This document shows, one piece after another, positions 16,772 to 55,091 of a stretch of DNA of 64,000 nt. The position numbers and the translations under genes are program-made. A model generated the notes under the pieces. That model saw only the letters and a program-made list of their open reading frames with translations, was not told the origin of the DNA and made no database searches. Source of the DNA: Haliotis rufescens (taxonomy: Eukaryota); the NCBI RefSeq assembly GCF_023055435.1, contig NW_025963890.1, positions 36,270,001-36,334,000 on the forward strand, in the 5' to 3' direction. Within the stretch, counting starts at the first letter, position 1. Each line of letters opens with the position of its first letter.

Positions 16772-19700
16772 TGGGGGGTATCGGAGACACCCACACAGGA
16801 CAGAGCAAGTGTGGCGGGGTATCGGAGACACCCACACAGGACAGAGTGAATGTGGCGGGGTATCGGAGACACCCACACAGGACAGAGTGAATGTGGCGGG
16901 GTATCGGAGACACCCACACAGGACAGAGCAAGTGTGGCGGGGTATCGGAGACACCCACACAGGACAGAGCAAGTGTGGCGGGGTATCGGAGACACCCACA
17001 CAGGACAGAGTGAAAGTGGCGGGGTATCGGAGACACCCACACAGGACAGAGCAAGTGTGGCGGGGTATCGGAGACACCCACACAGGACAGAGCAAGTGTG
17101 GCGGGGTATCGGAGACACCGACACAGGACAGAGTGAATGTGGCAGGGTATCGGAGACACCCACACAGGACAGAGTGAATGTGGCGGGGTATTGGAGACAC
17201 CCACACAGGACAGAGTGAGTGTGGCGGGGTATCGGAGACACCCACACAGGACAGAGCAAGTGTGGCGGGGTATCGGAGACACCCACACAGGACAGAGCAA
17301 GTGTGGCGGGGTATCGGAGACACCCACACAGGACAGAGTGAATGTGGCGGGGTATCGGAGACACCCACACAGGACAGAGCAAGTGTGGCGGGGTATCGGA
17401 GACACCCACACAGGACAGAGCAAGTGTGGCGGGGTATCGGAGACACCCACACAGGACAGAGCAAGTGTGGCGGGGTATCGGAGACACCCACACAGGACAG
17501 AGTGAATGTGGCGGGGTATCGGAGACACCCACACAGGACAGAGCAAGTGTGGCGGGGTATCGGAGACACCCACACAGGACAGAGCAAGTGTGGCGGGGTA
17601 TCGGAGACACCCACACAGGACAGAGTGAATGTGGCGGGGTATCGGAGACACCCACACAGGACAGAGCAAGTGTGGCGGGGTATCGGAGACACCCACACAG
17701 GACAGAGCAAGTGTGGCGGGGTATCGGAGACACCCACACAGGACAGAGTGAATGTGGCGGGGTATCGGAGACACCCACACAGGACAGAGTGAATGTGGCG
17801 GGGTATTGGAGACACCCACACAGGACAGAGTGAGTGTGGCGGGGTATCGGAGACACCCACACAGGACAGAGCAAGTGTGGCGGGGTATCGGAGACACCCA
17901 CACAGGACAGAGCAAGTGTGGCGGGGTATCGGAGACACCCACACAGGACAGAGTGAATGTGGCGGGGTATCAGAGACACCAACACAGGACAGAGCAAGTG
18001 TGGCGGGGTATCGGAGACACCCACACAGGACAGAGCAAGTGTGGCGGGGTATCGGAGACACCCACACAGGACAGAGTGAATGTGGCGGGGTATCGGAGAC
18101 ACCCACACAGGACAGAGCAAGTGTGGCGGGGTATCGGAGACACCCACACAGGACAGAGCAAGTGTGGCGGGGTATCGGAAACACCCACACAGGACAGTGA
18201 GTGTGGCGGGGTATCGGAGACACCCACACAGGACAGAGCAAGTGTGGCGGGGTATCGGAAACACCCACACAGGACAGAGTGAGTGTGGCGGGGTATCGGA
18301 GACACCCACACAGGACAGAGTGAGTGTGGCGGGGTATCGGAGACACCCACTCAGGACAGAGTGAGTGTGGCGGGGTATCGGAGACACCCACACAGGACAG
18401 AGCGAGTGTGGCCGGGTATCGGAGACACCCACACAGGACAGAGTGAGTGTGGCGGGGTATCGGAGACACCCACACAGGACAGTGAGTGTGGCGGGGTATC
18501 GGAGACACCCACACAGGACAGAGTGAGGCGGGGTATCGGAGACACCCACACAGGACAGAGTGAGTGTGGCGGGGTATCGGAGACACCCACAAAGGACAGA
18601 GTGAGTGTGGCGGGGTATCGGAGACACCCACACAGGACAGAGCAAGTGTGGCGGGGTATCGGAGACACCCACACAGGACAGAGTGAGTGTGGCGGGGTAT
18701 CGGAGACACCCACACAGGACAGAGTGAGTGTGGCGGGGTATCGGAGACACCCACACAGGACAGAGTGAATGTGGCGGGGTATCGGAGACACCCACACAGG
18801 ACAGAGCAAGTGTGGCGGGGTATCGGAGACACCCACACAGGACAGAGCAAGTGTGGCGGGGTATCGGAGACACCCACACAGGACAGAGTGAATGTGGCGG
18901 GGTATCGGAGACACCCACACAGGACAGAGTGAATGTGGCGGGGTATTGGAGACACCCACACAGGACAGAGTGAGTGTGGCGGGGTATCGGAGACACCCAC
19001 ACAGGACAGAGCAAGTGTGGCGGGGTATCGGAGACACCCACACAGGACAGAGCAAGTGTGGCGGGGTATCGGAGACACCCACACAGGACAGAGTGAATGT
19101 GGCGGGGTATCAGAGACACCAACACAGGACAGAGCAAGTGTGGCGGGGTATCGGAGACACCCACACAGGACAGAGCAAGTGTGGCGGGGTATCGGAGACA
19201 CCCACACAGGACAGAGTGAATGTGGCGGGGTATCGGAGACACCCACACAGGACAGAGCAAGTGTGGCGGGGTATCGGAGACACCCACACAGGACAGAGCA
19301 AGTGTGGCGGGGTATCGGAAACACCCACACAGGACAGTGAGTGTGGCGGGGTATCAGAGACACCCACACAGGACAGAGCAAGTGTGGCGGGGTATCGGAA
19401 ACACCCACACAGGACAGAGTGAGTGTGGCGGGGTATCGGAGACACCCACACAGGACAGAGTGAGTGTGGCGGGGTATCGGAGACACCCACTCAGGACAGA
19501 GTGAGTGTGGCGGGGTATCGGAGACACCCACACAGGACAGAGCGAGTGTGGCAGGGTATCGGAGACACCCACACAGGACAGAGTGAGTGTGGCGGGGTAT
19601 CGGAGACACCCACACAGGACAGTGAGTGTGGCGGGGTATCGGAGACACCCACACAGGACAGAGTGAGGCGGGGTATCGGAGACACCCACACAGGACAGAG

Positions 19701-20202
19701 TGAGTGTGGTGGGGTATCGGAGACACCCACAAAGGACAGAGTGAGTGTGGCGGGGTATCGGAGACACCCACACAGGACAGAGCAAGTGTGGCGGGGTATC
19801 GGAGACACCCACACAGGACAGAGTGAGTGTGGCGGGGTATCGGAGACACCCACACAGGACAGAGTGAGTGTGGCGGGGTATCGGAGACACCCACACAGGA
19901 CAGAGTGAGTGTGGGGGGGTATCGGAGACACCCACACAGGACAGAGTGAGTGTGGCGGGGTATCGGAGACACCCACACAGGACAGAGTGAGTGTGGCGGG
20001 GTATCGGAGACACCCACACACGACAGAGTGAGTGTGGCGGGGTATCGGAGACACCCACACAGGACAGAGTGAGTGTGGCGGGGTATCGGAGACACCCACA
20101 CAGGACAGAGTGAGTGTGGCGGGGTATCGGAGACACCCACACAGGACAGAGTGAGTGTGGCGGGGTATCGGAGACACCCACAAAGGACAGAGTGAGTGTG
20201 GC
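16772..20202. repeat. GC-rich minisatellite, 41-bp unit, about 84 copies
   Basis: Unit GGCGGGGTATCGGAGACACCCACACAGGACAGAG(CAAG/TGAA/TGAG)TGT with near-identical copies. It generates all ORFs at 16.7-20.3 kb. Confidence 0.98.
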
Positions 20203-33792: not shown

Positions 33793-33853
33793 CGTGTGGA
33801 TTCGAAGTTACTGGCTTCAGTATGAGGACAGCTTGTGAGGAGTAAGTCTCCAT
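33793..33853 (-). CDS. Candidate alternative first coding exon, METYSSQAVLILKPVTSNPH
   Basis: caaaATGG start context, 61 nt (20 codons + 1), donor CACG|gtgagt in phase 1 matching the 13659 acceptor. A CpG-richer segment lies just upstream (about 33930-34130). Confidence 0.65.
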
Positions 33854-35267
33854 TTTGGCAGTGGCTTGCATTCAGTTTGTTATTCCCCACATGAAAATCC
33901 TTCACAAACTGTCACCTGTTTGCCATTAAAGTCGCTGCGTGGGCTTTGAGTTATCTACCTGCAATGCCGTTTCACAACTTGCCGCTCATGGGCCAGCGAG
34001 CAGGCAGGACTGTCCCCGAGTTTGCCAATCAGACGGGAGAGCGACTTTTACCCAGCAACTCGAAGGAAGGGAAACAATGCCTGGATATACTTGAAGAAGG
34101 GGTCGCGGTAGAGAAGAGGAGGAATGCGACACTATGGAATAACATTGTCGTTAAATTACAAGTTCTTAAAATGCAATCAGCCGTTCAGTTACTGAAGAGG
34201 CTGGGCTATGAATGCTGTGCAACAAAGAATCAGTTGGGGGTAGTTTCCCCAGCTTATTTTTGTCACGGTCAATTGTAAACACAAATGGAGTTATGAAAAC
34301 ATTTCTGTGTCAATTTAGATCGTCCACTTTGGCTGGTCAGACAAATTCTATGTCTTCATGTCAACAGGGGACACATTGAGACAAACATGCTGCTTGTAAG
34401 ATGACTGGCTGGGACCTAAAGTTAAATAATGCTAAATTAGACCAAATTTGATTTCCAAATACCCTGCAGTTGATTCAATATCATGTGAATTTGAAAAATC
34501 AGTTATACCCTGGATCCACAATGTAAAACCCCAAACACACTCATACCAAGAATAACAGAAATAGAGTCTGATTTGTTTTACGAAGTATCAAATTCTTATT
34601 TGGCTTAAAATGATTCATGAGCAAATTATTGTCGACAAACAAGGTGCATTGATGTTTTGATCTATATTAATACAACAAATTTACTGCCATTGAAATAAGT
34701 TGATATGAACAAAGGTATATTTTCAGCTTCTCAAATAAACACTAACCTTTAATTAAAAACTCCACAAAACATTTTTTTACACTTGTTATAATTTCTCAAA
34801 TGTGGTATAAAATTTGAATATAAGAGTCTTTTCTTTCTTCCAGTTGTGTCTCTTAACACATTTCAGTATGAAGTACTTCAAATTCGATTGATAAGGGTAG
34901 ACCTGTCATGATCATTTAAAGAAACATACACTTCAACAGCATGATGCCATCATTTCCCTGTTATTTTTCCATTTCATTGTTTATGTTTTTTTATTTGGAA
35001 AGAAATAAAATACTTTTTTTATTCTTATACACACAACGTTAGTCACCAATATGTCTTATACCCATTTCATGAGTAAATAAATTATTCAATAGTTCAGACA
35101 ATCAATTGGGTTTTGGGTCTTATGGATATATAAGCCTACACTAAATTTGCACACAAAAATATTGAAACTTTTTATTGCAGACCAAAAACTGCATGTTTTT
35201 TTAAAGAATGAGTGAGTTGGTTTTAATGCAGCTTTGATGTGGTAGGAAAGCCATAAGTGATGGAAGT

Positions 35268-35316
35268 TATTATTATTATTATTATTATTATTATCATCAT
35301 TATTATTATTATCATC
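35268..35316. repeat. (ATT)n/(ATC)n microsatellite
   Basis: Read directly from the sequence. A second (ATT)n tract lies at about 58928-58955. Confidence 0.85.
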
Positions 35317-35933
35317 ACTGTAACTGATCTAAGTAAACAAAGTATCTATTGATAAACATTTGATGGATCTCAAGTATCAACATATGGTCTTAGTAAGGTA
35401 AACCAAGTCACCAAAAAGATTTGGCCAATGTAAACATCATTATAGCAAAAAATTAGAACAAGGAATGGCCTTGTCATAACCCATCCACAAACACAATGAT
35501 AGTAATAATCACAACATAAACTTTGTTATCAGAACCTTAATATTTTCATCTTCTCAATAGTCCAGTTAATCTCTGCCAACTCATATTGACCTGACCCGTC
35601 GGGCTTGCAAGAAGTAAATATATATAAAGCTACTATAGACTGAAGTTTATTGTGACATCTTTTGTAGCATTTCAATGAGTGAATGAAAGCATAAAGTCCA
35701 TGAACAGTTGCCTATGCCCAACACAATGCGGCTTTGAGAGTGCCCACAAGCTTGACGAAACAAGTATTTCAGAGTAGGGTTAATTCATGTCATATGTTTG
35801 TGTTGCAGTGGTAAAATACTTTCAACATTACTCATCAAGGGGAGGACTTGGATTTTATGCTGCTTGCATCACTATTCCAGTCCCAGTCTATACAGGTGGT
35901 GGAGATGAAGTTTGGGCTTCACTTACTGTACTC

Positions 35934-36439
35934 CATCTTCATGAGGCAAGGGAGTTAACTGACTTTAAAAGTCAAGTTTCCACCCTTGCCAAATGAGGCT
36001 GGTATTATGGAGTTATAGTTTGGCTGGACAAACAAGACTATGCCCAGTCCAATCAAAATCACTTAGGAAATCAAAATCCGGTTCGTAAACTGTCATGCAG
36101 ATTTTGTTCGATTGCAGGATTTGCAAGGCTCGGTTAACTCGGTGTCAACAGATATTTTAAAAATCTTTTCATGTTTTTAATCAAGGTTTACACGTGATTT
36201 GATGCACTTTGCGATGTAAGACCCGTTTTATCACAATATAGATCTTGATTATTGGTCAGATCGTTTTGTCTGAGTGCTGCCATTTTGTTTGAAGCAAATG
36301 CTAGTGATACAAGAGGCAGAATCTGATTGGTCAATAACCAGTGGTGGCGCTATGATCAAGCCCAGAAAGTCCAGCCTAGTTCGGCAAGGGTGGAAACTGG
36401 ACTTTTACAGTCAGTTAACTCCCTTGCCCCGGGAAGATG
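35934..36439. mobile_element. Non-autonomous DNA transposon with about 70-bp TIRs and a 9-bp TSD, nested in a family-A SINE
   Basis: CATCTTC..GGCAAGGGAGTTAACTGACT.TAAAAGTC.AGTTTCCACCCTTGCC is mirrored at the right end. The TSD ACTGTACTC is at 35925-35933 and 36440-36448. Confidence 0.9.
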
Positions 36440-36739
36440 ACTGTACTCATGTTGGGAATCAAACCTTGGCCTTAGGTGTGATGAACAAACACAAGGCTAC
36501 CCACTGCTCCAGTTATAAACTTGAATGAGTTTTGTTTAATGCTGCTTTGAATGTATTTCGGTCATATCACGATGTGTCAGTTTGTGGAGAAAGTCTTGCA
36601 GTGAGTGCTGGTCTTAGACACTTAATGACCACTTGAACAAACGAGGACAGGTATGAATCAAGAAGCAGGGAAATTGAAATGCATACCAGATGCAACTGTG
36701 CACTTGGAATGCAGTAACTTACATGGCTAGGTCACCCAC

Positions 36740-36764
36740 CTGTTCTCCACTGGTCATATGACAT
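36740..36764 (-). CDS. Weaker candidate N-terminal exon, MSYDQWRT
   Basis: 25 nt, donor ACAG|gtgggt in phase 1. Possible acceptor ctttcttgctatcag at 36787 and a possible upstream non-coding donor CCAG|gtaagc at 36925/36924. Confidence 0.3.
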
Positions 36765-38207
36765 GAGCTGTGTCAACTTTATCCTTCTGATAGCAAGAAA
36801 GTAAGGTATAATAACAAGCAGTTCTTTTCAATAATGTTTCTTAAAACTTGAATTTGAGTGGATAAATATGTACATGTTATCTTCAGACAATAACTAAATG
36901 GGCAGTGTTCCTTTGTTAGCTTACCTGGTATGAAGTTATGAAATGTTTCTCATTTACCCACTTTCCATATTAATGATGGGAACTAATACTCAGATATCAT
37001 TCTGTGAATTCAAACAGTTTGACATCTTCCATCTATTTGAGTAATTTGAAAACAAAAAGGCCTGATTTATTCCAAAGATAATAAGGATTTTACATCTCTA
37101 AATAATGACACAAATCATAAAAAAACATCTTCAGAATGACATTTCCATCAAGAGTAATAGAAATGATAGGAATTGAGGATGCCGTTGTACATCACTGTCA
37201 TGTTTATATCATATCTCAGCATATCCATCTATGATATGACAGCATAACACGGACATGTTCCATACAGCCTGTCACAGCAGTGCAGGGCACACCCAGTTCT
37301 CCTGTAGACAAATGTATGTATAGATGAAACACCACCTGTATCACCATACATCAAAGGTGAAAGCATCTCTTCGTGAGACATGTTTGTCAGGGTGCTTAGT
37401 GACACATGAGTAGTGAATACTTGCATGCTGAAGATGTTCTGAATGAACAGACGGGGGTGTTTCTGAATTGATATTTCTAACAGGGTGAATCAACAGTTAA
37501 ACCTTGTCTGTTTCAATACATGTCTTGCCTCTTTCAATATAGGTCTTGTCTATTTCAGTTGAGGTCGTGTCTATTTCACATTCGGGTGGTGTGGCAGGAC
37601 CCAAACAGGACTGGGAACGTTTAATTTAGATTGGGCGTATGTAATAGGATTGTCCCTCGGAAGAGCAGTTGCTTATTCATGTATTGTCAATTCCCTGTAA
37701 AACATGGAGTGACATGAACATCCCTTACTTATTTCCAAGAACTGTCACTTTCTGGGGAGATGTGTTACCTTGTTTATGCCTTATCAGTTTATTTATGACA
37801 CAGGGGAACTTGTGAACATCACTTACAGACAATGAATCAAGGTGTAGAATACCCTATTACTCTGTGGATTAGTATTATCCCTTTGGTATTATCACTAATT
37901 CATAGTGCTCCATAAACACATGCTCATGATGTAGTCAGAATCGTACAACTGACTTTTTGGCAGCTAAAGGTTTCTTATGACTACAGACAGGGTTTTGATG
38001 CTTTTATTTACATGTCTGAAACTTTGTGATATCTGAGACCAGTTAGAAGGTGATTTAGATCCAATTTACATCAAGGACTAAATTTTTTATTGAGTGATAT
38101 GTTTCCCCACCAGAAATAGACAAGTATAAACATAAACACTCATGCATTGGTGCTGTAGACAACAGCAATAGACATGGCTTCAGGGGAAATAGACATCACT
38201 CCCAGCT

Positions 38208-38759
38208 AGACAGACAAAGTGGAGCTAATGCGATCAACACAGACAGCCGGCTTCTAGCCCTGATCCATAGAAAGACATGGTGGAACCAAAGCGATCAACA
38301 CGGACAGCCGGCTTCTAGCCCTGATCCGCAGACAGACATATTGGAACCAAAGCCATCAACACAGACAGCCGGCTTCTAGCCCTGATCCATAGAAAGACAT
38401 GGTGGAACCAAAGCCATCAACCCAGACAGCCGGCTTCTAGCCCTGATCCACAGACAAACATGGTGGAACTAAAGCGATCAACACGGACAGCCGGCTTCTA
38501 GCCCTGATCCACAGACAAACATGGTGGAACTAAAGCGATCAACACGGACAGCCGGCTTCTAGCCCTGATCCACAGACAGACATGGTGGAACTAAAGCCAT
38601 CAACACAGACAGCCGGCTTCTAGCCCTGATCCACAGACAGACATGGTGGAACCAAAGCGATCAACACAGACAGCCTGCTCCTAGCCCTGATCCACAGACA
38701 GACATGGTGGAACTAAAGCGATCAACACGGACAGCCGGCTTCTAGCCCTGATCCATAGA
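38208..38759. repeat. Minisatellite, 61-bp unit, about 9 copies
   Basis: GC(G/C)ATCAAC recurs at 38230, 38291, 38352 ... 38718 (period 61). Confidence 0.95.
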
Positions 38760-39168
38760 TATTCAACCTTAAGATAAGAACAACATAAATCAGTGTTGCA
38801 ATAGACACCAGGAACATTCCATTGTCAATCATTAGCTACACATGCTATTTTCAGTGTCTTGACATTATTTGACACTGATTGAAGACTAGTAATTAGAACC
38901 GTTTGCAATCAAACATAAATCAAACAATTGTCTAAAAAGACTCTTGTATATCCTTGTTAGTTAATAACCTCAACAATTTCAACAACAATACTCTTGTTAA
39001 TGAAACAAATGTTTAAAACTTCAACCATTGCTTACAGAAGTCGTAAAGCATGACAATACAGGCTAATTCCCTGTATCCTATACATGTAAGTCAATACTTG
39101 CTTCATACCATATATAAATCAATAGAAATGTATATACAATTCAAAACCCCATTTCCAGACAAACTTAC

Positions 39169-39181
39169 CAAGCTGCGACAT
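39169..39181 (-). CDS. Candidate alternative first coding exon, MSQL
   Basis: ATG TCG CAG CTT G|gtaagt, phase 1. In-frame stop upstream. GC/CpG-richer segment at about 39300-39390. Confidence 0.55.
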
Positions 39182-39696
39182 TCTGAGCAAAATAATCCTG
39201 TCCCGCTTCACTCCAAGCCTTAGCACATCTGAGTTTAACCTTCACTGAACATGTCTCCTGTTATCGTGCACATCTATATTTCATGTTATTTGTACAGTGT
39301 GGGAGACGCTCTGGCATTGTCCCAAAACCCGTTACCCCTCTTCTGTTCACTGCCTAGGTATGTAAGCGGGCCGGATCTCCCCGCGATAAGAGCACATACA
39401 CAAGGAGATATACTGTAAATTCTCACTGGAGTAAGTTGACAAGGTACTGTCAGGAACGACCTTGTTCCAATACTGTCAGGTTGTACTGATGAGATATTAA
39501 CAAGGGAAGGTATTGATGACTTGCTGCAACCAAATACCTAGTTATTGATGTACAGGGTACTGCAGGTTGAAGGCTTCATGATGAATATATGACTGTTATG
39601 AACAGAATTGTACTGAATAGATATGTTATGATGATATATATAATTCATTTCTAGTAGTATACATGGGTACCTGGTAGGATTTATACATAGTGTTTC

Positions 39697-39921
39697 ATGA
39701 CCACACTCAGCAATATTCCAGCTATATGGCGATGGAATCTGTAAATAATCGAGTCTGGACAAGACAATCCAGTGATTGACATCATAAACATCGATCTACG
39801 CATTTGGGATACGATGACATGCTTCAACCAAGTCAGCGAGCCTGACTACCCTATTCCATTAGTTGCTTCTTCCGACAAGCATGGGCTGCTGAAGACCTAT
39901 TCTCTACCCTGATCTTCACAG
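39697..39921 (-). mobile_element. SINE family B
   Basis: Reverse complement of the 4175 and 22468 copies. Confidence 0.85.
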
Positions 39922-40780
39922 GTCTGTGTTATGGTACTCTTGCAGTACAACACATTAGTACTGATGATTTAAACAAATAAGTTATTCTGCCAAAAGGGAA
40001 AAAGTAGTTTGAATATTTTTTGAAGATTATATAAATGATAACAAGCAATGTGGATGACAATGTCTTATTTACACTTGTCATCAATACAAATTGCTTGTCA
40101 TCTATCTCAACTTCTTCCATTCCAGATTAAACTATTAACAAGTTGCATAAAGGTAAGGCATTGTCATACACCTGTGTATCTGATGCAATATTCAATACTT
40201 TCTCTGCTAATACCTTCATTCTGTGAAGACAGCCTCGTCATGGATGGAGATGCAGAACAATTTCCATGGTTTCGTTACCACACTTTACAAGCTGTTAGCT
40301 ATGCATGCTTAATGTCATTACGCAGATGCATTCACCAGTGCATTTAAACTCCATTGATACTGTACAACAAATGAATGCACAACAATTAATCTGTATTGAA
40401 TTTATTTTCATGGATTTGATAAATCTTATCAGCAATAAAGATGTTGAAAATGTTACAGCATCATATATTACTGATACTTCATTCTTAAAAAAATTATAGT
40501 TATATGACACGACATTTTTTAATCTGTGTGATTTATACACCACACAATGTCTTTATATTTCAGTCCCAACCTGTTGACAGCAATCTAGACCAGGTCTGAT
40601 AAATTTGTTTCTTGTGATTTACAATACCAGCTGCACATAATATTCAAACACAGGGTTTCAAATGACATTGTTATCTGGAGTGAAGTTTAACTTGGACAGC
40701 TAGTTAAAAAAAATGGACTATTTCTAGGTCTAATTCTGACCACAAGGATGCAGGGGGAGATAATAGTAATTAAGGATAAG

Positions 40781-41482
40781 TATTGTAAGGCATACTTTGG
40801 TATCATACAGTGACAGTCACCTCATTGTAAGGTATACTTATGTATCATACAGTGACAGTCACCTCATTGTAAGGCCTACTTATGTATCAGAGTGCAGTCA
40901 CCTCATTGTAAGGTATACTTATGTATCATACAGTGACAGTCACCTCATTGTAAGGTATACTTATGTATCATACAGTGACAGTCACCTTATTGTAAGGTAT
41001 ACTTATGTATCATACAGTCACAGTCACCTCATTGTAAGGTATACTTATGTATCATACAGTCACCTCAGTGTAAGGTATACTTATGTATCATACAGTCACA
41101 GTCACCTCATTGTAAGGTATACTTATGTATCATACAGTGACAGTCACCTCATTGTAAGGTATACTTATGTATCATACATTGACAGTCACCTCATTGTAAG
41201 GCCTACTTATGTATCATACAGTTACAGTCACCTCATTGTAAGGTATACTTATGTATCATACAGTGACAGTCACCTCATTGTAAGGTATACTTATGTATCA
41301 TACAGTGACAGTCACCTCATTGTAAGGTATACTTATGTATCATACAGTGACAGTCACCTTATTGTAAGGTATACTTATGTATCATACAGTGACAGTCACC
41401 TTATTGTAAGGTATACTTATGTATCATACAGTGACAGTCACCTCATTGTAAGGCCTACTTATGTATCATACAGTGACAGTCA
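40781..41482. repeat. Minisatellite, 42-bp unit, about 16-17 copies
   Basis: Unit ATTGTAAGGTATACTTATGTATCATACAGTGACAGTCACCTC. It explains ORF 40797..41546. Confidence 0.97.
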
Positions 41483-41999
41483 GCTTCATTGTTCACCTAG
41501 ATGCGTTACCAGCTCTTTCGATACTCTACTGCTACATTACAAATAAATACACAAATTGCATTAGCCCACTGCCTTAAAATACTTGAAAATGTTTTTTCAA
41601 ATGAAGTTTTGTGATTGGGAAAAATGAATTTTAGCTGTCAAATTCAAGGAGCTAAAAGGTGATAGAAACATCTATTTGCCGTGTTTCACAGCTTTAGACT
41701 TGTCCTTTTGAACTTTCACCAACTTCAGCGTAGCATGGGTAATTAGACAGTGTCAGTGTAGCATGAAAAGCACATCTGACAGTTAGGTCTCTATTAAATC
41801 TTTACAATTTTCTATGGGCATTTGTCTATGACAACAAACATGTCTGGCTGAAATCTTTAGGCCTATGTTTATGGTGTTGATTACAGTCTAAGTGTTGTCA
41901 ATATCATACGATACCCTGCACAATGAGGTGTGACATGGATCTTGTCCCTTGTCAATGACCATCAAGTACAACACTGAAATCAACACCCCCAGTCTTGCA

Positions 42000-42157
42000 G
42001 GGGTCACCAAGCTCTGGGTCACTGCCTAGCCGAGGGGGGAGGGGGACCTGGGGTCACCAAGCTCTGGGTCACTGCCTAGCCGAGGGGGAGGGGGAACTGG
42101 GGTCACCAAGCTCTGGGTCACTGCCTAGCCGAGGGGGAGGGGGGAGGGGGAGGGGGA
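42000..42157. repeat. G-rich tandem repeat, about 50-bp unit, 3 copies
   Basis: GGGGTCACCAAGCTCTGGGTCACTGCCTAGCCGAGGGGGAGGGGGA.. three times, ending in (GGGGGA)4. Confidence 0.9.
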
Positions 42158-42234
42158 CGGATACTAAGCACTTGGTCAGGTCACTGCCTGCAAGGGAGAA
42201 GGGGTGGCCGTTGGTCTAATGGCTACTATCAGTG

Positions 42235-42248
42235 AGGTCAAGAGGTCA
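42235..42248 (+). promoter_or_regulatory. Perfect nuclear-receptor DR2 motif (AGGTCA-AG-AGGTCA)
   Basis: Exact consensus match only. Function is untested. Confidence 0.3.
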
Positions 42249-42484
42249 AGGATGAATGGGAACTGAGAAGTATGGGGAGCATGTCTACATAAGAAGTATG
42301 GCTACATAATGATTGTAATGATATATCTTTGATCTGACTGAGGAGATTGTCAAACAGTAGACAGACATTCTCATAAAGTTCCTGTCAAGGAGAAAGTTTG
42401 ATTGACAATCTCACTTCTCTTGGTAGTTTTAATGACAGCTTATGACTCATATTTGATGTACCAGTAACATATTTATTTTAGTGT

Positions 42485-42725
42485 GTGAGTCAGTGAGTTG
42501 GGTTTGGCGCCGCTTTTAACTGCATTCCAGTTATATCACGGCATGTCAGCTTAATGTGGAAGGAAAGCCCAAAGTGATGCAGGTCTCAGATGTTTACCAC
42601 TTCTGTAAAACCCACGAGCATGTTTATAGTGCTGACAAACCTAGAAACATAATCAGGGCGAACCGGCATCCGAACCCACAATCATAGGTTCCTGGCGTGC
42701 CCAAGGGACGCAATTATGCACAGCA
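42485..42725 (-). mobile_element. SINE family D
   Basis: Closely similar to 62132-62362 (GGAAAGCCCAAAGTGATGCAGGTCTCAGA..GCTGACAAACCTAGAAACATAATC). Confidence 0.85.
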
Positions 42726-42977
42726 ATATTTTAGTGTAATTTATATATATATATATGTTATTGATGCAAAATTAACATAAAATTAGATATTTTTTTAAAA
42801 TGTAAAACAAATGCTTCATGATACAATGTTGATGAAACAAACAATACAGACAAATATTGGATTCGGAGTCACAACAAGCAGATCCTGAAAGCACAAAGGG
42901 ATCCAGCTCTACAGTACAGCAATTTGTACAGCAATTGTACAGTCCTATAGCAATGGGCCTACCCTTACCCCTTTAAA

Positions 42978-43334
42978 GAGTGCGTGAGTTGGATTATTGT
43001 TTGTTTGTTGTTTAATGCTGCACCCTGCAATATTCCAGTTGTATGATGGCAGCCTGTAAATAATTGACTCTGGACCAGACAATCCAGTGATTGACATCAT
43101 GAGCATCAGTCTACACAATTAGGATACGATGACAACCATCTCAGCTTGATGTGGAATAACGCTTAAGTGATGCAGGTCTAAGATGTGTACCAGCTTGGTG
43201 AAATCCTCAAGCCCAGGTATTGTGCTGACAAACCTAGAAACATACTCCATGGTGAAAGTTTCAGGCATGCTTAAGGAACCCAGCTTAGAAATGTGCATTG
43301 CAGTGCCTTCAACGACTAGGTCACCTGTGCCCCT
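42978..43334 (-). mobile_element. Composite SINE: family D head and body joined to the family B 3' half
   Basis: 43000-43133 matches family B and 43140-43334 matches family D. Confidence 0.7.
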
Positions 43335-43954
43335 GACCTGTTGACAGCAAAATTACAGGTATTACCAAAGGATGATTTAGTAACGCCTCACCCGGATATG
43401 GTAACACACAACCAGCCAAGTCATAGCAGGACACGTTTTTCTGGTTAATGAGTAGCCTTACTCAACTCCAAACACAGTTACCACTAGATTTCCATTACCG
43501 GTACATGATGATGACCTTGAAACTGCATCAGCATCCCCTGCTATTACGTTTAATCAAATGTAACAATAAGTCAAATGTTTCAGTAATATATTCTCCGTAC
43601 CACAGCTTTAACTCATACATGAATACATGTGTAGTTGGACGTTACCAAGGCAATGTCTGATGTCATAGAAACTGGCTGGAGATAAAGGCAGTATGGAGGC
43701 CACAACTGAGGGGATTGTTTTGGTATAAAGACAAACTCCCACTGTTCACTAGCCTGGGACCACCACATCAGCTTGGGCATTCTGGACAATAGTTTTCACA
43801 ATCTCACACAAAGGACCTTTTTATTGAAGAAACACAGCTGCATCCTGTAGAGACCATGCTAACTGGTTGATAAGGAAAATCAATCTTTGTTATCAAATTA
43901 CAAACAGAAAAACAAATAGTACTGCAAAACACTGCACAAAACTTCAACAGCATC

Positions 43955-45356
43955 ACTATAACAGCACACAGCTGCATTCAACTGCAACAGCACAACACTA
44001 CATTCAACTGCGACAGCACATTGCATTCAACTACAACAGCACATTGCATTAAACTACAACAGCACAACATTGCATTCAACTGCAACAGCACATTGCACTC
44101 AACTGCAACAGCACAACATTGCATTCAACTGCAACAGTACAACATTGCATTCAACTGCAACAGCACAACATTGCATTCAACTGCAACAGCACATTGCACT
44201 CAACTGCAACAGCACAACATTGCATTCAACTACAACAGCACAACATTGCATTCAACTGCAACAGCACAACATTGCATTCAACTACAACAGCACAACACTG
44301 CATTCAACTGCAACAGCACATTGCACTCAACTGCAACAGCAGAACTTTGCATTCAACTGCAACAACACAACACTACATTCAACTGCGACAGTGCAACCCT
44401 GCATTCAACTACAACAGCACATTGCATTCAACTGCAACAGCACATTGCATTCAACTGTAACAGCACAACATTGCATTCAACTACAACAGCACAACATTGA
44501 ATTCAACTAAAACAGCACAACATTGCATTCAACTACAACAGCACAACCCTGCATTCAACTACAACAGCACAACACTGCATTCAACTACAACAGCACAACC
44601 CTGCATTCAACTACAACAGCACAACCCTGCATTCAACTACAACAGCACAACACTGCATTCAACTAAAACAGCACAACACTGCATTCAACTACAACATCAC
44701 AACCCTGCATTCAACTACAACAGCACAACCCTGCATTCAACTACAACAGTACAACTATGCATTCAACTACAACAGCACAACACTGCATTCAACTAAAACA
44801 GCACAACACTGCATTCAACTAAAACAGCACAACACTGCATTCAACTACAACAGCAAACCCTGCATTCAACTAAAACAGCACAACACTGCATTCAACTAAA
44901 ACAGCACAACACTGCATTCAACTACAACAGTACAACACTGCATTCAACTACAACAGCACAACCCTACATTCAACTAAAACAGCACAACACTGCATTCAAC
45001 TAAAACAGCACAACACTGAATTCAACTACAACAGCACAACACTGCATTCAACTAAAACAGCACAACACTGCATTCAACTAAAACAGCACAACCCTGCATT
45101 CAACTACAACAGCACAACACTGCATTCAACTACAACAGCACAACCCTGCATTCAACTATAACAGCACAACACTGCATTCAACTACAACAGCACAACCCTA
45201 CATTCAACTAAAACAGCACAACACTGCATTCAACTAAAACATCACAACACTGCATTCAACTACAACAGTACAACACTGCATTCAACTACAACAGCACAAC
45301 ACTGCATTCAACTACAACAGCACAACACTGCATTCAACTATAACATCACAACCCTG
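43955..45356. repeat. Minisatellite, 26-bp unit with 23-bp variants
   Basis: Unit CA(T/C)TGCATTCAACT(A/G)CAACAGCACAA. Confidence 0.96.
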
Positions 45357-46063
45357 CTCAGCATGTCCACAAACAGGCTAATGTAATACTGTATAATGAT
45401 CATCTTGTAGATACAAATGGTATGAATATATATATGCTCTCAAGGCTGTTGGCAATCAAGTGTACATACTCCACAGAGAGGTGCTCATAAAATCCTCTAT
45501 AAGCCATTGTTTACCTGACAGGTGGTACCACTGTTAAAACTACTACACCAAGTACTGCTGCAGTTGTCTCCCTTGACAAATAACGTCCAGCATTTGGTGA
45601 AGCAACAATGTATGCTGTGTTCCCGATCCCAAGCCTACTGGTTACTAGCCAGCTCAGCGGACTTGATTTATAATATTCAGGCCTGATTTTCAATTAAAAT
45701 AGACAAAATTGAACTCTATTGATTTTATGTGTGGTTATATTTGGAATATCAGAAATACAATGGATAGGTGTTCAACTAAAAATGATGTCTGTATATAAAT
45801 CATTCATTGTCACTGAGAGCAAAACAATTCCAACACATGGTTGTCCAAGCTCCGACCCAGCTTTTGGCGTACTGACTTGTTGTCTATGGTACATTAATTC
45901 CTGGCACGAACCCCCCTAATAACAACACAGTAGCAGGTGTCACTGCAGGAATAGGGAGTTCAAAGGTAACTTTCAGTGATACATGTTGGTTAGCACTGGA
46001 TATAATTGAAACTGATGTTTGAAACTCATGTCTGTATGTTGTTTAATGTCTCAATGTCTCAAT

Positions 46064-46221
46064 GGGCAGTGCAGTAGGCAAACAATCAAGTGTTCACTCG
46101 CCATGCTGAAAGCCTGGGTTCAATTCCTGACATGGGTACAATGTGCGAAGCCCATTTCTGGTGTCCCCAGTTGCGATATTGCTAGAATAGTGCTAAAAAT
46201 GAATGAAATTCACTCACACAC
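46064..46221 (+). mobile_element. SINE family A (plus strand, degenerate)
   Basis: GGGTTCAATTCC..ATGGGTACAATGTGCGAAGCCCATTTCTGGTGTCCCC..CACTCAC. Confidence 0.8.
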
Positions 46222-46632
46222 TTTTTACAAAAATCGTGTAAGTGTATATGAAATGTACACACATTACTGCACTCCACAACCTGTAAGATCTGTATATAAA
46301 CGGGGCAAATGTCACGCGTGATGGCTGATATCCCAACGCACATGTCTGTGTCTGCACCATCACCTACACTAGAGCAGTTAATTACTCTTTGACCCTCCTG
46401 ATATGAACGTGAGTACAGTCCTGGACTTACTAATCTGAACAACTGGTACCTGGTACAAGAACAGCTGACCTCCTCAACTCTTATCAATGTCTCCTTGTCT
46501 GTCTCCCACCACCCGGAGGATTTAACGAAAAATTGAATCCAACTCAAAAACAATTGAATTATGTCTTAACAATGACATTATCTGATAATATGATTATTAC
46601 CCTTGTATGTTTTCATATCATGATACACATGG

Positions 46633-46851
46633 AATCCGCACTAGAATTGATATTCAGCCACCAATGATTATCGTAAGAGGTAACTAACGGTTAGACCCAA
46701 TGACTTGGTTGATGCATGTCATTGTATCCCAATTGATACTCATGATGTCAATTACTGGATTGCCTGGTCCAGATTCGTTAATTTACAGACCGCCGTCATA
46801 TGGCTGGAATGTTGCTGAGTGCGGTGTTGAAAACACCAAACCAAACAAACC
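46633..46851 (+). mobile_element. SINE family B
   Basis: CGTAAGAGGTAACTAACGG core, GGTCCAGA.TCG..ATTTACAGACCGCCGTCATA, and the shared tail. Confidence 0.82.
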
Positions 46852-46871
46852 ATATCATAAATATCATAATA

Positions 46872-47059
46872 GGACTATAAAATACGGTTAACTATGGTGA
46901 TAGCGAACTCAAACGAACCCCTTATTTAGTTTATTATAACTGTATATTATACTGTTCGTTATAAGCATATATACAGCAAATGGCTTGAACAAAAAATATA
47001 TGTTAGTCATATCTGTCAGTTCACTATAAGCGTGTTCATTATCAACGCAATTTACAGTA
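46872..47059. mobile_element. Degenerate Tigger-like MITE
   Basis: Repeated GTTC(G/A).TATAAGC motifs and a right terminus ..TTTACAGTA. The left terminus is degraded. Confidence 0.45.
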
Positions 47060-47304
47060 TGTATTACAGTATGTTCAGGAAAAGTTCGCCTAATACAATT
47101 CTCATTCCTCTGATATGCTATTATGATAAGGAAACACTTCGCAAATGGTCTCCAGCAATCCATTATTTGAAGCATGCACAAATACTTGGCTATTATGTAC
47201 ACAAGATTAATAGTCTTAATAACTTGTCAACATGCAATATCTGGCAATAACTACAGACATTAAAGTGAGAAAACTGACAACACATTTGGTTATGATCCAG
47301 ACCC

Positions 47305-48292
47305 CGATATGAAACGTACACCAACTTCAGCGATGTGAAACTTACACCCACTTTAGCGATGTGAAGCATACACCCATTTCAGCGATATGAAACACACCCA
47401 CTTCAGCGATATGAAACATACACCCACTTCGGCAATAAGAAACATACACCCACTTCGGCGATATGAAACATACACCCACTTCGGTGATATGAAACATACA
47501 CCCACTTCAGCGATATGAAACATACACCAACTTCGGTGATATGAAACATACACCCACTTCAGCGATATGAAACATACACCAACTTCAGCGATAGGAAACA
47601 CACCCACTTCAGCAATATAAAACATACACCCACTTCAGCGATATGAAACATGCACCCACTTCAGCGATATGAAACATACACCCACTTCGGCAATAAGAAA
47701 CATACACCCACTTCAGCGATATGAAACATGCACCCACTTCGGTGATATGAAACATACACCCACTTCAGCGATATGAAACATACACCAACTTCAGCGATAG
47801 GAAACACACCCACTTCAGCAATATAAAACATGCACCCACTTCAGCGATATGAAACATACACCCACTTCAGCGATAGGAAACACACAACCACATCGGCGAT
47901 ATGAAACATACATCCACTTCAGCAATATGAAACATACACCCACTTCAGCGATAGGAAACACACAGCTACATCGGCGATATGAAACATACACCCACTTCAG
48001 CGATATGAAACATGCACCCACTTCAGCGATATGAAACATGCACCCACTTCAGCGATATGAAACATACACCAACTTCAGTGATAGGAAACACACAACAACA
48101 TCAGCGATATGAAACATACACCCACTTCAGTGATATGAAACATACACCCACTTCAGCGATAGGAACACACCCACTTCGGCGATATGAAACATACACCCAC
48201 TTCAGCGATATGAAACATGCACCCACTTCAGCGATATGAAACATACACCCACTTCAGCGATAGGAAACACACCCACTTCAGCGATATGAAAT
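47305..48292. repeat. Minisatellite, 26-bp unit with 24-bp variants
   Basis: Unit GATATGAAACATACACCCACTTCAGC. Confidence 0.96.
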
Positions 48293-48765
48293 GTACATCT
48301 TTCAGTAGTCATGACTGACCCAGATAGCTAAACATTTCCCAATCAGGCCTGGCACAACAGTAAACAAGGTAACATATGGAACATGATCAAACCTGCCAGT
48401 GTACATGTTTAATTGAAGCAAAAATTATTGAACATGCGTTACAATCACAACTCGAGCAACAGCTTGGTGACAATTGGCCTACATTCTTGAAAATGAGTCA
48501 TGATATTGAATCATGTGAGCAATTGTATTCAAACAGGAAACAGTTTCACCTCCTTTTATCTAAATGTATACATGATTATATATCTTTGTGTGTACAATTC
48601 CATGTGTCTGTCTCTTCAAAAATGTCCTCACCTCAAGGACGACCATTGCCCTACCCACCATCGCTAATAATATACATGGTATTTGATATGTTACACACAG
48701 TGGTACCACTCCCACATTCAAATAAAAAGTACAAAGACTGCACTGACATTTAAATGAAATTGGGA

Positions 48766-48897
48766 GTGAGTGAGTATGGTTGTATGCTGCTTTTAGCTAT
48801 TTGTGCAGTTGGGGACCCCAGGACTTCACACATTGTACCCCTGTCGGGAATCAAACCCGGGCCTTAACACTTTAACCACTGGGCTACCCCACCCCCC
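48766..48897 (-). mobile_element. SINE family A (internally deleted)
   Basis: Shares head, CTTCACACATTGTACC core and tail with the other copies. Confidence 0.8.
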
Positions 48898-50089
48898 TTA
48901 ACTGAAATTGGAAAAGTAATCTGACTGTTTATTAAATGTTTAGTATATTTCATATCCTATTTTCTTTCATATTAGAGTGGTGTTTTAAACGATTGTCATC
49001 AATATCAGAGTTGAATGTATTACATTCACATGCGTATGTGATTCATGTTCAACAGTAGAGTCAGCATTATTCCAGCAATATCATTACAGCCTGTAAATAT
49101 TCAGCTTGTCACACAAGCATATCTCTTTGGCCTTTCATGATCTAAACATTTTATAAAGATTAGGTTTAATTTTTCTCTCTCATTCTTTATTGAGATTTTT
49201 GTTTTCAACATGAATCAACAAAGATTTTCATCAACTTACCCCTTTCTTATTTTCTGTTTTCTAACACTGTTCCTGAATGTCCAATGTTTTAAACCTGGAG
49301 TGACATCTACAAACTTACTGAAATGAATGCACCTAGGCTGCATCGACATGGTCATAGGATACTGTGACAGGGAGGGTATTTGTACACCTGATAACATATG
49401 ATACCGTCAGTGGGTATTTGTACACATGACCATACTGCTGACATTAGAACTAAAATTACAAATGCACTTTTAATCACGCTAAAACAAACCTGATACTCAA
49501 ACAAACCTCAACACCAGATTAAAACCACATCAAACATCAAACAGATTAAGCCTGTGCCTTGGGTTAAAGTGACAGTTGCACATAACATCAATACCAGAAT
49601 ATAAGATGTCACCATGACCTTAGTCATGACTGTCGTAATATATTTATATTACTAAAAGCCTAGGCAAGTCTAGATCAAACTATACCCAGTCTAGTTTCTT
49701 TGATTCCACCAAAAAAATTATAATTATTTAAAAAAAATGTTTTCATAGACTAAGTTTTAGTCTACCATGACATATGATTATTTATTAGTGGTATTTTGGG
49801 AGACTGTTTTATTTACATAGAATTTGTTTCACATCTGAAATTGGCTTTTAAATAGAGTTAATTTGATAGATTCAAAACATGTTCCACCCGTTGATTATCA
49901 TTCCTTCCATGTCAGCTGGCCCCACCTGGATGATTCATACAGGTATGAGATGCATGCTAGTAACTCCAGGATCTGCTGGCTGTATATATAACTCAGCTGG
50001 GCTCAACTGCATTTAGATTATCTTATTGTAACACCCACCCACATGTTTACAGAGTGTCACCCACACTTTATATGTTGAATGTAACAGGC

Positions 50090-52518
50090 CGACACCCACA
50101 TTGTATACATTGTATGTACAGAATGACAGCCACATTGGATACATTGCATATACAGAATGACATCAACATTGTATACATTGTATATACAGAATGACATCAA
50201 CATTGTATGTACAGAATGACACCCACATTGGATACATTGCATATACAGAATGACATCAACATTGTATACATTGTATATACAGAATGACATCAACATTGTA
50301 TATACAGAATGACACCCACATTGGATACATTGTATATACAGAATGACATCAACATTGTATACATTGTATATACAGAATGACATCAACATTGTGTACATTG
50401 TATATACAGAATGACATCAACATTGGATACATTGTATATACAGAATGACACCCACATTGTATACATTGTATATACAGAATGACACCCACATTGTATACAT
50501 TGTATATACAGAATGACACCCACATTGGATACATTGCATATACAGAATGACACCTACATTGTATACATTGCATATACAGAATGACACCTGCATTGTATAC
50601 ATTGTATATACAGAATGACACCCGCATTGTATACATTGTATATACAGAATGACACCCACATTGTATACATTGTATATACAGAATGACACCCGCATTGTAT
50701 ACATTGTATATACAGAATGACATCAACATTGTATGTATTGTATATACAGAATGACATCAACATTGTATACATTGTATATACAGAATGACACCCACATTGT
50801 ATACATTGTATATACAGAATGACACCCACATTGTATACATTGTATATACAGAATGACACCCAAATTGTATACATTGTATATACAGAATGACCCCCGAATT
50901 GTATACATTGTATTTACAGAATGACATCAACATTGTATGTATTGTATATACAGAATGACATCAACATTGTATACATTGTATATACAGAATGACACCCACA
51001 TTGTATACATTGTATATACAGAATGACACCCACATTGTACACATTGTATATACAGAATGACACCCGCATTGTATACATTGTATATACAGAATGACATCAA
51101 CATTGTATGTATTGTATATACAGAATGACATTAACATTGTATACATTGTATATACAGAATGACACCCACATTGTATACATTGTATATACAGAATGACATC
51201 AACATTGTATACATTGTATATACAGAATGACACCCACATTGTATACATTGTATATACAGAATGACATCAACATTGTATGTATTGTATATACAGAATGACA
51301 TCAACATTGTATACATTGTATATACAGAATGACATCAACATTGTATACATTGTATATACAGAATGACACCCACATTGTATACATTGTATATACAGAATGA
51401 CACCCACATTGTATACATTGTATATACAGAATGACACCCACATTGTATACATTGTATATACAGAATGACATCAACATTGTATACATTGTATATACAGAAT
51501 GACACCCACATTGTATACATTGTATATACAGAATGACATCAACATTGTATACATTGTATATACAGAATGACACCCACATTGTATACATTGTATATACAGA
51601 ATGACATCAACATTGTATGTATTGTATATACAGAATGACATCAACATTGTATACATTGTATATACAGAATGACATCAACATTGTATACATTGTATATACA
51701 GAATGACACCCACATTGTATACATTGTATATACAGAATGACATCAACATTGTATACATTGTATATACAGAATGACACCCACATTGTATACATTGTATATA
51801 CAGAATGACATCAACATTGTATGTATTGTATATACAGAATGACATCAACATTGTATACATTGTATATACAGAATGACATCAACATTGTATACATTGTATA
51901 TACAGAATGACACCCACATTGTATACATTGTATATACAGAATGACATCAACATTGTATACATTGTATATACAGAATGACACCCACATTGTATACATTGTA
52001 TATACAGAATGACATCAACATTGTATACATTGTATATACAGAATGACACCCACATTGTATACATTGTATATACAGAATGACATCAACATTGTATACATTG
52101 TATATACAGAATGACACCCACATTGTATACATTGTATATACAGAATGACATCAACATTGTATGTATTGTATATACAGAATGACATCAACATTGTATACAT
52201 TGTATATACAGAATGACATCAACATTGTATACATTGTATATACAGAATGACACCCACATTGTATACATTGTATATATAGAATGACACCCACATTGTATAC
52301 ATTGTATATACAGAATGACACCCACATTGTATACATTGTATATACAGAATGACATCAACATTGTATACATTGTATATACAGAATGACATCAACATTGTAT
52401 ACATTGTATATACAGAATGACATCAACATTGTATACATTGTATATACAGAATGACACCCAAATTGTATACATTGTATATACAGAATGACCCCCGAATTGT
52501 ATACATTGTATTTACAGA
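50090..52518. repeat. AT-rich minisatellite, 34-bp unit, about 70 copies
   Basis: Unit ACATTGTATACATTGTATATACAGAATGACA(CCC/TCA). It explains the periodic ORFs at 50.0-52.4 kb. Confidence 0.98.
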
Positions 52519-52574
52519 CTGAGTAAGTGAGTTCAATTAATGACTGTTTTATTTTAGCTTTATTGTTTTGTTTT

Positions 52575-52690
52575 TTTGTTTTTTTAACGCCACACTCAAT
52601 ATTCCAGCTATATGATGGTGATATGATAGTCGCCTATTACAGCAAGCATGGGTTGCTGAAGACCTATTCTAGCCAGATCTTTACGGGTCA
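52575..52690 (-). mobile_element. SINE family B (internally deleted), at the edge of the 34-bp satellite
   Basis: Head and tail are present and the middle is missing. A degenerate satellite unit resumes at about 52695. Confidence 0.7.
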
Positions 52691-53555
52691 ATTCACAGAA
52701 TGACATCCACATTATATATCCATTGTATACATAAATGACATCCACAATATAATATTTATTTGTATGGATGTCAGTGGTTATCCTCATGAAATAATTACTG
52801 GATTCTGATCTATGAATATTGCTGATCATTCAGATTCAATAAGCCATGCTGCGCTGCTTTGTTATAGACAAAAACTACAGAGAATGATACTCAAAATCTA
52901 AACACATGTAAGCATTAATCCTCTATAAACGAACAACCCCAACAAAGGTAAGCAATTGCAAATAGTCCCAAGTGCTGACAACATCCATGAAATCAACATC
53001 TACAAATTTCCTGATTGACAGAAATATACACAAGGTAAATAGAAAACTAGAAGTAGGGAGTACAGCAAGCCAGGGATGTTTGAATGTCAATGACAAAGGT
53101 ATAATACTAGAATGTCGAAAGTCTCAGGAAATGTCTATTCAAAATGCAGGGCAGTTGGCTCATATATCATCCTAAACAATCAAGACAAACTGGCAGTTGG
53201 AAATCTGCACACAAAGACACTGATTCCAGTTTTACCTGTGACAACCTGAACATTTCAGGTCATGAATCTGAGGACAGACTGATCAATACAACCCGGCTGG
53301 CAGCCATCAACACTGTCGGTGGTGACATGTACAGTTAACATTGTCTACATCAAGTTGACGGTACCAACTATCACCATGTGGAGGTCCTACCTGTATGACT
53401 ACCTGTAGCATGACCTGTATCAACGACAGGGTAGCTCAACATCACTGGCGTGTTGTCAATTCAAATTTCCATCTCTTCTCAAACACCCATTGTCACTACA
53501 GACAAGTTTCAATCATTATGAAATATACGACAGTATGTGACTTGTAAGTACTCAC

Positions 53556-53592
53556 CGCTTATTACATTGCTGCGCCTAACCCATCGAGGCAT
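53556..53592 (-). CDS. Candidate alternative first coding exon, MPRWVRRSNVIS
   Basis: gaaATG start, 37 nt (12 codons + 1), donor AGCG|gtgagt in phase 1. In-frame stop upstream. CpG-rich leader (gtgcgcgtcg...). Confidence 0.6.
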
Positions 53593-55060
53593 TTCCCAAG
53601 GTGCAAAGCTGTGTGCGCGTCGCACAACAAAACGATCAATAAAAGTTGCACGTTATTATTTTGCCGTAGTATCCAGCTGTAGGCACACCAGCTGTCGAGA
53701 TCAGAGCCACTTCATTGTCGGCAAATAATTGATCACTCCAAACTTTGAACAGAATTCAATAGGGCCAGGTACTCCACAAGGGCTAAGACTTCAGCATGGG
53801 CTATGCTGGTTTGTTCTGCACCACTGTGCTAAAACTGTGCAGGTAGAACTGCTCTTTGTTTGTTTCAAATATTGATCAATAAAGACTGTCAACAGTCAGA
53901 GATGGTGTATCAGAGATTGACGCCCTTCAGTTTCATACGACCAAGTCATCAGATTGTATGTCGGTCACACCAAATTATCTCTGAGAGGGAAATATGCACT
54001 ATAATTAGTCCTAACACCACGTGCCAGTTCTTAGTCTGTGCTAATCTGTTTCACGTACATATCTAGGATGCCTTACACACTGATTAGAACATGTGGCCTG
54101 AGCTGTAAGTCAAAGCAGTTAGTCACCAGCAACAATTCATACTGAAGAGTGCACCAACATGTCGTGTGGAGATTTGGTGACAGGTTACAGCCTTGAAACC
54201 ACTTATCACCATGGCACACCTCACAAAATGGAAGTCTTGCATAATTAATCACACTATCAGCCTTGTATATTACACTGGAGTGAGAGGTAATGACATCTGA
54301 TTAATACCAATAATCCATCAATCAAGCATACGTAAGCCCTAATCTGGACCACATCTTACAGATAATCTGTGCCTGTGTGTACTAACTCTGCTCACACCAT
54401 GAGGAGCACAGGGACCAGCCCCATGGGGGGTACACACATTACTGCAGTCATTGCATACTTGTGAGATGTAGAAAACTATCAACAGTTAATACTTTCAGTG
54501 ATCACTACAGGTGCTAACAAGGATGGAAGAAGAAGGAGCTTGAAAACCACATGTCATCTCCATCTTCATCGGGGATTTCATTCCCACATGGTTTGGTGGA
54601 TGAATATTTTATATTTGAAAATAGGAAATATGCCCCAGTTGCACATATCCTCTGAACTAGCTATTTGAAACGCTCAACTAGGTCAGCTCAAATATTATTG
54701 CTTGAGTTGTCAACCATGGCATATTCAATTACTTGTTGACTTGGAGACAAAGGGTTTGCACATCAAAATAGCTCACAATAAGATTCTAAACTTTGTCCTT
54801 CTCTTGCTGCTCCCGATGATACTAAAATGTTAGCTGGGTCACAATGACTTCATAAAACTTCAATTTAAATCAACATTTACTTTCCAAACAAACTTCAAAA
54901 CAAGTGATGACAGAGGTGTCCCTTCTTAAAGTTCAAATTCAATGTCAGAACAGGTCTGTCAGTCTACCCAATATTAGGCTACATGTACTTAAAATACTTT
55001 GTTGTGTGGATACAGACAATCCTAAAATAACTTTTCAGAGAGAAAAAATGGATTACTCAC

Positions 55061-55091
55061 CAAATCTGATGTGCAACACTGTGTCGTGCAT
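55061..55091 (-). CDS. Candidate alternative first coding exon, MHDTVLHIRF
   Basis: atcATG start, 31 nt (10 codons + 1), donor TTTG|gtgagt in phase 1. In-frame stop upstream. Confidence 0.5.

Follow-up and report, generated by a model that had tools for sequence, protein, structure and literature searches.

Plectin, a large cytoskeletal linker, uses short alternative first coding exons that are spliced to one common exon and provide its isoforms with specific N-termini. The UGT1A and clustered protocadherin arrays consist of tandemly duplicated, paralogous, and domain-coding exons. For vertebrate PALM2-AKAP2, naturally occurring Palm2-AKAP2 fusions and the use of alternative promoters have been described (bioRxiv 10.64898/2026.09.03.749080); its AKAP2_C-type body (PF15304) is either spliced to an upstream coding unit or produced from internal or alternative promoters. 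Here we analyze a locus of Haliotis rufescens in a window of 64,000 nucleotides (nt), the whole stretch under study (C112:36270001–36334000 of its own assembly), in which the gene lies on the minus strand. The original prediction had read four ATG-initiated mini-exons of this window, referred to below as candidates 1–4, as an array of alternative first coding exons feeding one acceptor at 13659. This acceptor is internal to the gene, and the phase-1 donor that mainly feeds it belongs to a coding exon of 525 nt outside the window; in the reading that we consider probable, it is also fed from an internal promoter with candidate 1, the other three candidates being chance. On this reading, the locus makes ordinary use of an alternative internal promoter and resembles vertebrate PALM2-AKAP2 more closely than any other system compared; it does not belong to the UGT1/protocadherin type.

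The window, which contains no N, holds the 3′ third of the Haliotis gene for an EH-domain/AKAP2-like scaffold protein. Exons were searched singly, not as a joined spliced protein. A full HMMER search with the common exon alone (exon A, 13007–13659, minus strand, part of an AKAP2_C/MISP-like body) returned as its best representative match a protein of 2084 amino acids (aa), aligned at aa 1428–1646. This is the Haliotis cracherodii RefSeq entry XP_071119810, ‘futsch-like isoform X2’, whose isoform X1 has 2176 aa. Exon A, also covered by RNA contigs (see below), is 99% identical to aa 1428–1644 of this protein, and exons A, B, and the last exon together show 98–99% identity to it. Exon B (7620–8800, minus strand), delimited by boundaries read in the sequence and by its joint in RNA, carries the AKAP2_C repeats (EREIRL..ERE.EL) and matches Pfam AKAP2_C (PF15304) in four stretches with 61.2 bits (cut-off 27, E 1.3e-16); the 2084-aa XP_071119810 scores 31.7 bits against the same family. 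The last coding exon (…KQRATPGDEE…WEQICNN; 5411–5552, minus strand) was located by tblastn of aa 2037–2084 of XP_071119810 with 98% identity and ends in a TGA stop at 5413–5411. What makes AKAP2 an AKAP is an amphipathic helix that binds PKA RII.

The long product, ~2100–2200 aa in H. cracherodii RefSeq, is built from two N-terminal EH domains (PF12763, E 8.5e-34, two stretches in XP_071119810), a long low-complexity middle, and the C-terminal AKAP2_C/MISP-like body, and the window corresponds to its C-terminal third. Long models of the same build are found in Argopecten, Patella, and Babylonia. The combination of EH and AKAP2_C in one protein is that of the H. cracherodii model; in the genome of the window the two are represented by exons that share a contig and a strand. 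The EH-domain exons lie 110–139 kb upstream of the last coding exon, and their identity to the H. cracherodii protein is only 83–89%, compared with 98–99% for exons A, B, and the last exon. The whole gene spans ~135 kb.

Exon A begins in phase 1 at the acceptor tgtttcag/AGTCAGAA (cag/AG, the slash marking the splice site) at 13659, has no ATG nearby, and ends in phase 0 with the donor CAG/gtgagt after 13007. The original prediction had the gene start at this common exon, which proved incorrect. No part of aa 1–1426 of XP_071119810 maps in the 64-kb window, and the preceding coding exon of 525 nt is located at C112:36340506–36341030 on the same strand, ~6.5 kb past the window end and 57 kb upstream of 13659. 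This exon encodes ...EEGLPPFNE and ends with ...CCATTTAATGAAG/gtgag in phase 1 with G at −1; joined to exon A, G+AG gives the Glu of ...PPFNE-E-SELRT. Junctions from exons beyond the window were what the prediction had itself named as the case against it, and the main phase-1 donor belongs to such an exon. Because the preceding exon lies beyond the window, positions 13660–64000 (minus strand) form the larger part of a single 57-kb intron of the long isoform, which runs to window-equivalent 70505. In Littorina isoform X1, as well as in two transcript-contig proteins from other species, the common exon is immediately preceded by the block ARxFAEMVQKP...LEMERRAVI..TVRRK of the 525-nt exon; such conservation across species indicates that the long junction is old and real. 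Further upstream, long-isoform exons extend over C112:36340506–36409050 on the same strand, with a single 2.5-kb exon of ~850 codons at C112:36343784–36346282 and the EH-domain exons at C112:36404467–36409050. A 92-aa insert immediately ahead of the 525-nt exon distinguishes isoforms X1 and X2 of H. cracherodii.

Logan RNA contigs of four runs (X1, X5, X12, and X13) were aligned to positions 8700–14699 only. The intron 13006–8801 is removed in all four runs, with GT..AG ends on the minus strand, and the runs therefore hold spliced RNA of the gene. Contigs of each run cover 13006–13660/1 and end or change exactly at the acceptor boundary. In run X13, a 3548-nt contig over exons A and B continues for 523 non-window letters past the acceptor, its alignment reaching 13661. 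Since the 525-nt exon and the intron both end in AG, the true extension is 525 nt, the exact length of the upstream exon, the 5′ edge of which is the divergence point of H. cracherodii isoforms X1 and X2 and a natural place for a contig to break. By its length, the contig appears to continue into the upstream exon. In runs X1, X5, and X12, the contigs go no further than 13660, so that only the G at −1 is common to them and the upstream sequence. The base at −2 is A in both the intron and the long-form exon, and the end at 13660 therefore implies a further partner whose −2 base differs, given the assumption that Logan contigs end at a branching k-mer. These observations suggest that exon A is joined to more than one exon upstream. 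The bases at −2/−1 of candidates 1–4 are CG, TG, CG, and TG, respectively; all of them fit the break at 13660, which cannot separate one from another.

Candidate 1 (33793–33871, minus strand) is a conserved and probable alternative first coding exon, identified by homology to Littorina and Mya N-termini. It extends from an ATG at 33853 to ...CACACG/GTGAGT, with 33793 as the last exon base, and encodes METYSSQAVLILKPVTSNPH. The ATG at 33853 stands in a strong context (gccaaaATGg; −3 is A and +4 is G). In the same frame, a start at the earlier ATG at 33871 (MQATAKMETYSS...) would add MQATAK before METYSSQAVLILKPVTSNPH. In the caenogastropod Littorina saxatilis, the N-terminus of isoform X3 is MSRTYSSSATLILR (longer: MSRTYSSSATLILRASTDQQVTN), and that of the model WAR23717 of the bivalve Mya arenaria is MDFVEPKVYSSSAVLILRP (longer: MDFVEPKVYSSSAVLILRPANSQTD); each is followed directly by the common exon. 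Homology and motif searches covered 72 kb, comprising the window and the part of the intron beyond it. For the two N-termini, the top tblastn match is at 33847–33803 on the minus strand, with E values of 1.8e-4 and 0.012. The motif YS[ST]x[AS]xL[IV]L occurs once in the six frames of the 72 kb, only at candidate 1, where 9 of 10 residues match on the right strand in a reading frame that starts at an ATG and ends at a phase-1 consensus donor. Some weak similarity shown by ‘TFSSKTLIL’, at window-equivalent 69.9 kb, was rejected, as this stretch lacks both an ATG and a donor and ends in a stop.

The uniqueness and placement of this match make it unlikely that none of the four mini-exons is used. 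In that case the acceptor would receive only the long-isoform exon, and candidate 1 would resemble the Littorina and Mya N-termini as a relic or by chance. Such a view would accommodate the run-X13 contig, which passes the acceptor into the 525 nt without a branch, and the H. cracherodii RefSeq entries in the collection, which are long isoforms only; the contigs of runs X1, X5, and X12 that stop at 13660, with the differing −2 base they imply, argue against it as well. On the sequence evidence, candidate 1 probably serves as a genuine alternative first coding exon, with which a short isoform probably begins.

By its composition, the segment 33872–34130 (minus strand) may serve candidate 1 as a TATA-less promoter or 5′ leader. 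This segment has a CpG observed/expected ratio (o/e) of 0.72–0.78 against 0.39 for the window (94th–95th percentile), and an inverted CCAAT box (ATTGG) is located at 34025–34029. We therefore propose a model in which at least one internal promoter resides inside the 57-kb intron. A first exon with its ATG at 33853 or 33871 and its donor after 33793 would encode METYSSQAVLILKPVTSNPH and splice in phase 1 to 13659, the predicted joint letters at 33793->13659 being AGTCAGAATTGAGG. The product would be an EH-less short isoform of ~677 aa bearing a conserved YSSxAxLIL N-terminal tag. From the features above we infer the transcription and joining of candidate 1 in Haliotis, the site of its promoter, and a function for the tag. 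Two transcript-derived proteins (P0018 and P0137) contain KSLI[IV]RKCSTG ~10 residues before the conserved PPKVNLYSEN; this element is similar to AVLILKP, the core of the Haliotis tag, and, judged by sequence, may be the same short motif at another position.

Several points weigh against the model of a long-isoform donor joined by candidate 1 alone. A short Haliotis isoform is absent from the protein collection searched, in which the 90% cluster of the H. cracherodii protein comprises X1, X2, and two single-exon open reading frames (ORFs) only. Nor does that collection contain same-species transcript-derived proteins with variant N-termini, the best word-search identity being 54% for exon A and 48% for exon B. 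The 525-nt match of the run-X13 extension is one of length and not of sequence, and no mini-exon joint to 13659 appears letter by letter in the contigs aligned at 8700–14699. A low-depth intron contig in run X13 ends at 13660, short of the exon, and misfits unitig behavior. An A occupies position −3 relative to the ATG in each of candidates 2–4 (post hoc, 0.325 cubed = 0.03), candidates 2 and 3 show mildly raised CpG, and Littorina first exons of one or two codons (‘M’ and ‘MI’) exist in this gene, so that one of the three could be real.

Read on the minus strand, the four ATG micro-ORFs with G/GTRAGT donors in phase 1 are all present where the original prediction had placed them, and exon A does start in phase 1, so that G+AG would give Glu at each junction with 13659. 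An upstream in-frame stop, said to have been checked for three, is present for all four. Candidate 2 (39169–39181, ATG at 39181) encodes MSQL and ends in ...CTTG/GTAAGT; candidate 3 (53556–53592, ATG at 53592) encodes MPRWVRRSNVIS and ends in ...AGCG/GTGAGT; candidate 4 (55061–55091, ATG at 55091) encodes MHDTVLHIRF and ends in ...TTTG/GTGAGT. All three lie on the minus strand with donors in phase 1 and are unsupported, having no homologue among the relatives' N-termini compared. The peptides of candidates 1–4, of 20, 4, 12, and 10 aa, are mutually dissimilar and contain no domain. Each of the four is single copy in the genome at the sensitivity of the search, and a repeat origin was rejected on this ground.

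The number of such mini-exons was compared with chance expectation. GTRAGT occurs at 26 sites on the minus strand of 13660–64000, where 20 ATG-to-donor pairs were counted; nine pairs are in phase 1, and four of these have G at −1; besides the four candidates there are thus five further phase-1 ATG-GTRAGT pairs on the same strand. Second-order Markov simulations gave a mean of 1.7 G/GTRAGT phase-1 pairs, and four or more in 10.5% of simulations. The set of four is not beyond chance (4 vs 1.7 expected, P ~0.1), and with candidate 1 set aside, the three pairs left against 1.7 expected fit chance. In the 300 nt upstream of the ATG, CpG o/e is 0.72 for candidate 1 (94th percentile of the interval), 0.58 for candidate 2 (85th), 0.56 for candidate 3 (82nd), and 0.33 for candidate 4 (50th). 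The CpG-richer DNA claimed beside three of the mini-exons is therefore clear for candidate 1 and mild for candidates 2 and 3, while candidate 4 sits at the median. Candidates 2–4 most likely arose by chance within a long, AT-rich intron, and the prospect of any individual one of them being real is slight.

A true array, in which all four mini-exons are promoter-specific first exons feeding 13659, appears very unlikely in the light of these counts. Three of the four have no similarity to any relative's N-terminus, 10% of simulations produce four such pairs by chance, five further phase-1 pairs are present, candidate 4 has no CpG enrichment, and no junction is seen in the contigs over the interval to which they were aligned. 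These observations have to be set against a consensus donor, phase 1, an upstream stop, and A at −3 in all four cases, the single-copy state of all four, the four short N-termini beside a long one in Littorina RefSeq (‘M’ and ‘MI’ included), and the contigs of three runs that break at the acceptor sharing only G, which any of the four would explain. What survives of the proposed array is that candidate 1 is conserved and that 13659 probably has more than one partner; the other three mini-exons have no homologue and their number fits chance. Conservation in relatives, put forward as a check, was likewise found for candidate 1 (Littorina X3 and Mya WAR23717) and not for candidates 2–4. The original prediction is thus partly supported: its observation is true as sequence, and its interpretation is right in kind, wrong on the gene start, and supported for one of four exons.

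The idea of variable first exons on a constant body does hold for the gene family, with one of the four abalone exons supported. RefSeq lists isoforms X1–X5 of Littorina saxatilis (XP_070195623 to XP_070195628), which are computed models, with five N-termini on the orthologous common exon: one of the long type and four short, two of which are only ‘M’ and ‘MI’. A second type of short N-terminus reads ...FQRWKKIYEE in Littorina X2 and MSIWDKWRDIYAQ (…WRDIYAQ) in an Elysia chlorotica model, in each case just before the common exon. The N-termini of Littorina X2, X4, and X5 have no counterpart in the Haliotis interval. When the N-termini of Littorina X2, Elysia, a bivalve transcript, and cephalopod-like transcripts were compared with the intron, nothing matched except candidate 1.

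These relatives raise the possibility, which we regard as doubtful, that Haliotis has several internal first exons and that, apart from candidate 1, they are not the four proposed. They would have donors other than GTRAGT, be leaders that code for nothing, or be located in the 6.5 kb by which the intron runs past the window end. The four short variants of Littorina, the WKKIYEE/WRDIYAQ type common to two gastropods, and the earlier filter, which demanded G/GTRAGT plus an ATG, are in line with this possibility; the 72 kb contain no W[KRDE][KRDE]IY motif or other N-terminal homology, and nothing positive speaks for it. A bolder and rather improbable extension would make the 57-kb intron a conserved promoter platform, with a tag older than the gastropod/bivalve split that acts as a short targeting or turnover motif, and with at least one of MSQL, MPRWVRRSNVIS, and MHDTVLHIRF serving as a further tissue-specific start, mirroring the five N-termini of Littorina.

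With the 525-nt exon and candidate 1 as the probable partners of 13659, the locus can be compared with the systems introduced above. The orthologous gene of Littorina saxatilis is alike in combining a long-type and four short N-termini on a common exon, with YSSSATLIL as the X3 tag, and differs in X2, X4, and X5, which lack Haliotis counterparts. PALM2-AKAP2 is alike in the two ways of expressing its AKAP2_C-type body; the upstream unit is two EH domains in abalone, whereas it is a paralemmin coiled coil in vertebrates. The YSSxAxLIL tag is seen in molluscs, in a comparison limited to molluscan sequences that did not extend to vertebrate PALM2-AKAP2. Plectin is a fair analogy in having isoform-specific short first coding exons on a common exon, but abalone has one supported internal first exon and its dominant partner is an ordinary upstream coding exon. 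The comparison with UGT1A and the protocadherins, which the original prediction had also drawn, fails because the variable exons of abalone are tiny (4–20 codons), mutually unrelated, and neither paralogous nor domain-coding; the likeness is limited to several upstream exons that could share one acceptor.

These results correct the gene model, in that the exon at which the gene seemed to begin lies in the interior of the coding sequence for a very long EH-domain/AKAP2_C protein. In addition, a short EH-less isoform is probably made from an internal promoter of the abalone gene, although none is present among the H. cracherodii proteins in the searched collection. The YSSxAxLIL tag provides a short motif, open to experiment, on a scaffold associated with the cytoskeleton. 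In combining an internal start with the splicing of an upstream coding unit to an AKAP2_C body, the layout parallels PALM2-AKAP2, which suggests that such a body frequently serves both as part of a fusion and by itself.

Approximately 10 kb of the 57-kb intron consists of minisatellite arrays. The minisatellite at 16775–20202 contains 84 copies of a 41-nt G-rich unit with 94% matches, a GC content of 0.6, and strong GC and AT skew, and gives rise, in several frames within the intron, to spurious ORFs that reach 1177 aa. Tandem arrays at 38208–38759, 40782–41492, 43955–45357, 47305–48291, and 50048–52522 have periods of 61, 42, 26, 26, and 34 nt, respectively, and the highest CpG o/e in the window is due to the array at 47.3–48.3 kb.

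The summed word depth of the RNA contigs is very high in all four runs at three places, reaching 4.5e5 at 11900–12099, 2.7e4 at 14300–14499, and 3.2e3 at 10700–10899. Many divergent contigs and loose ends pile up at each of them, which suggests expressed dispersed repeats resembling short interspersed nuclear elements (SINEs). A tRNA or SINE origin of the pile-ups was checked with ARAGORN, which found no tRNA. A related ORF fragment (…GSIP.M.TMCEAHF) occurs at both 1955–2092 and 11968–12138.

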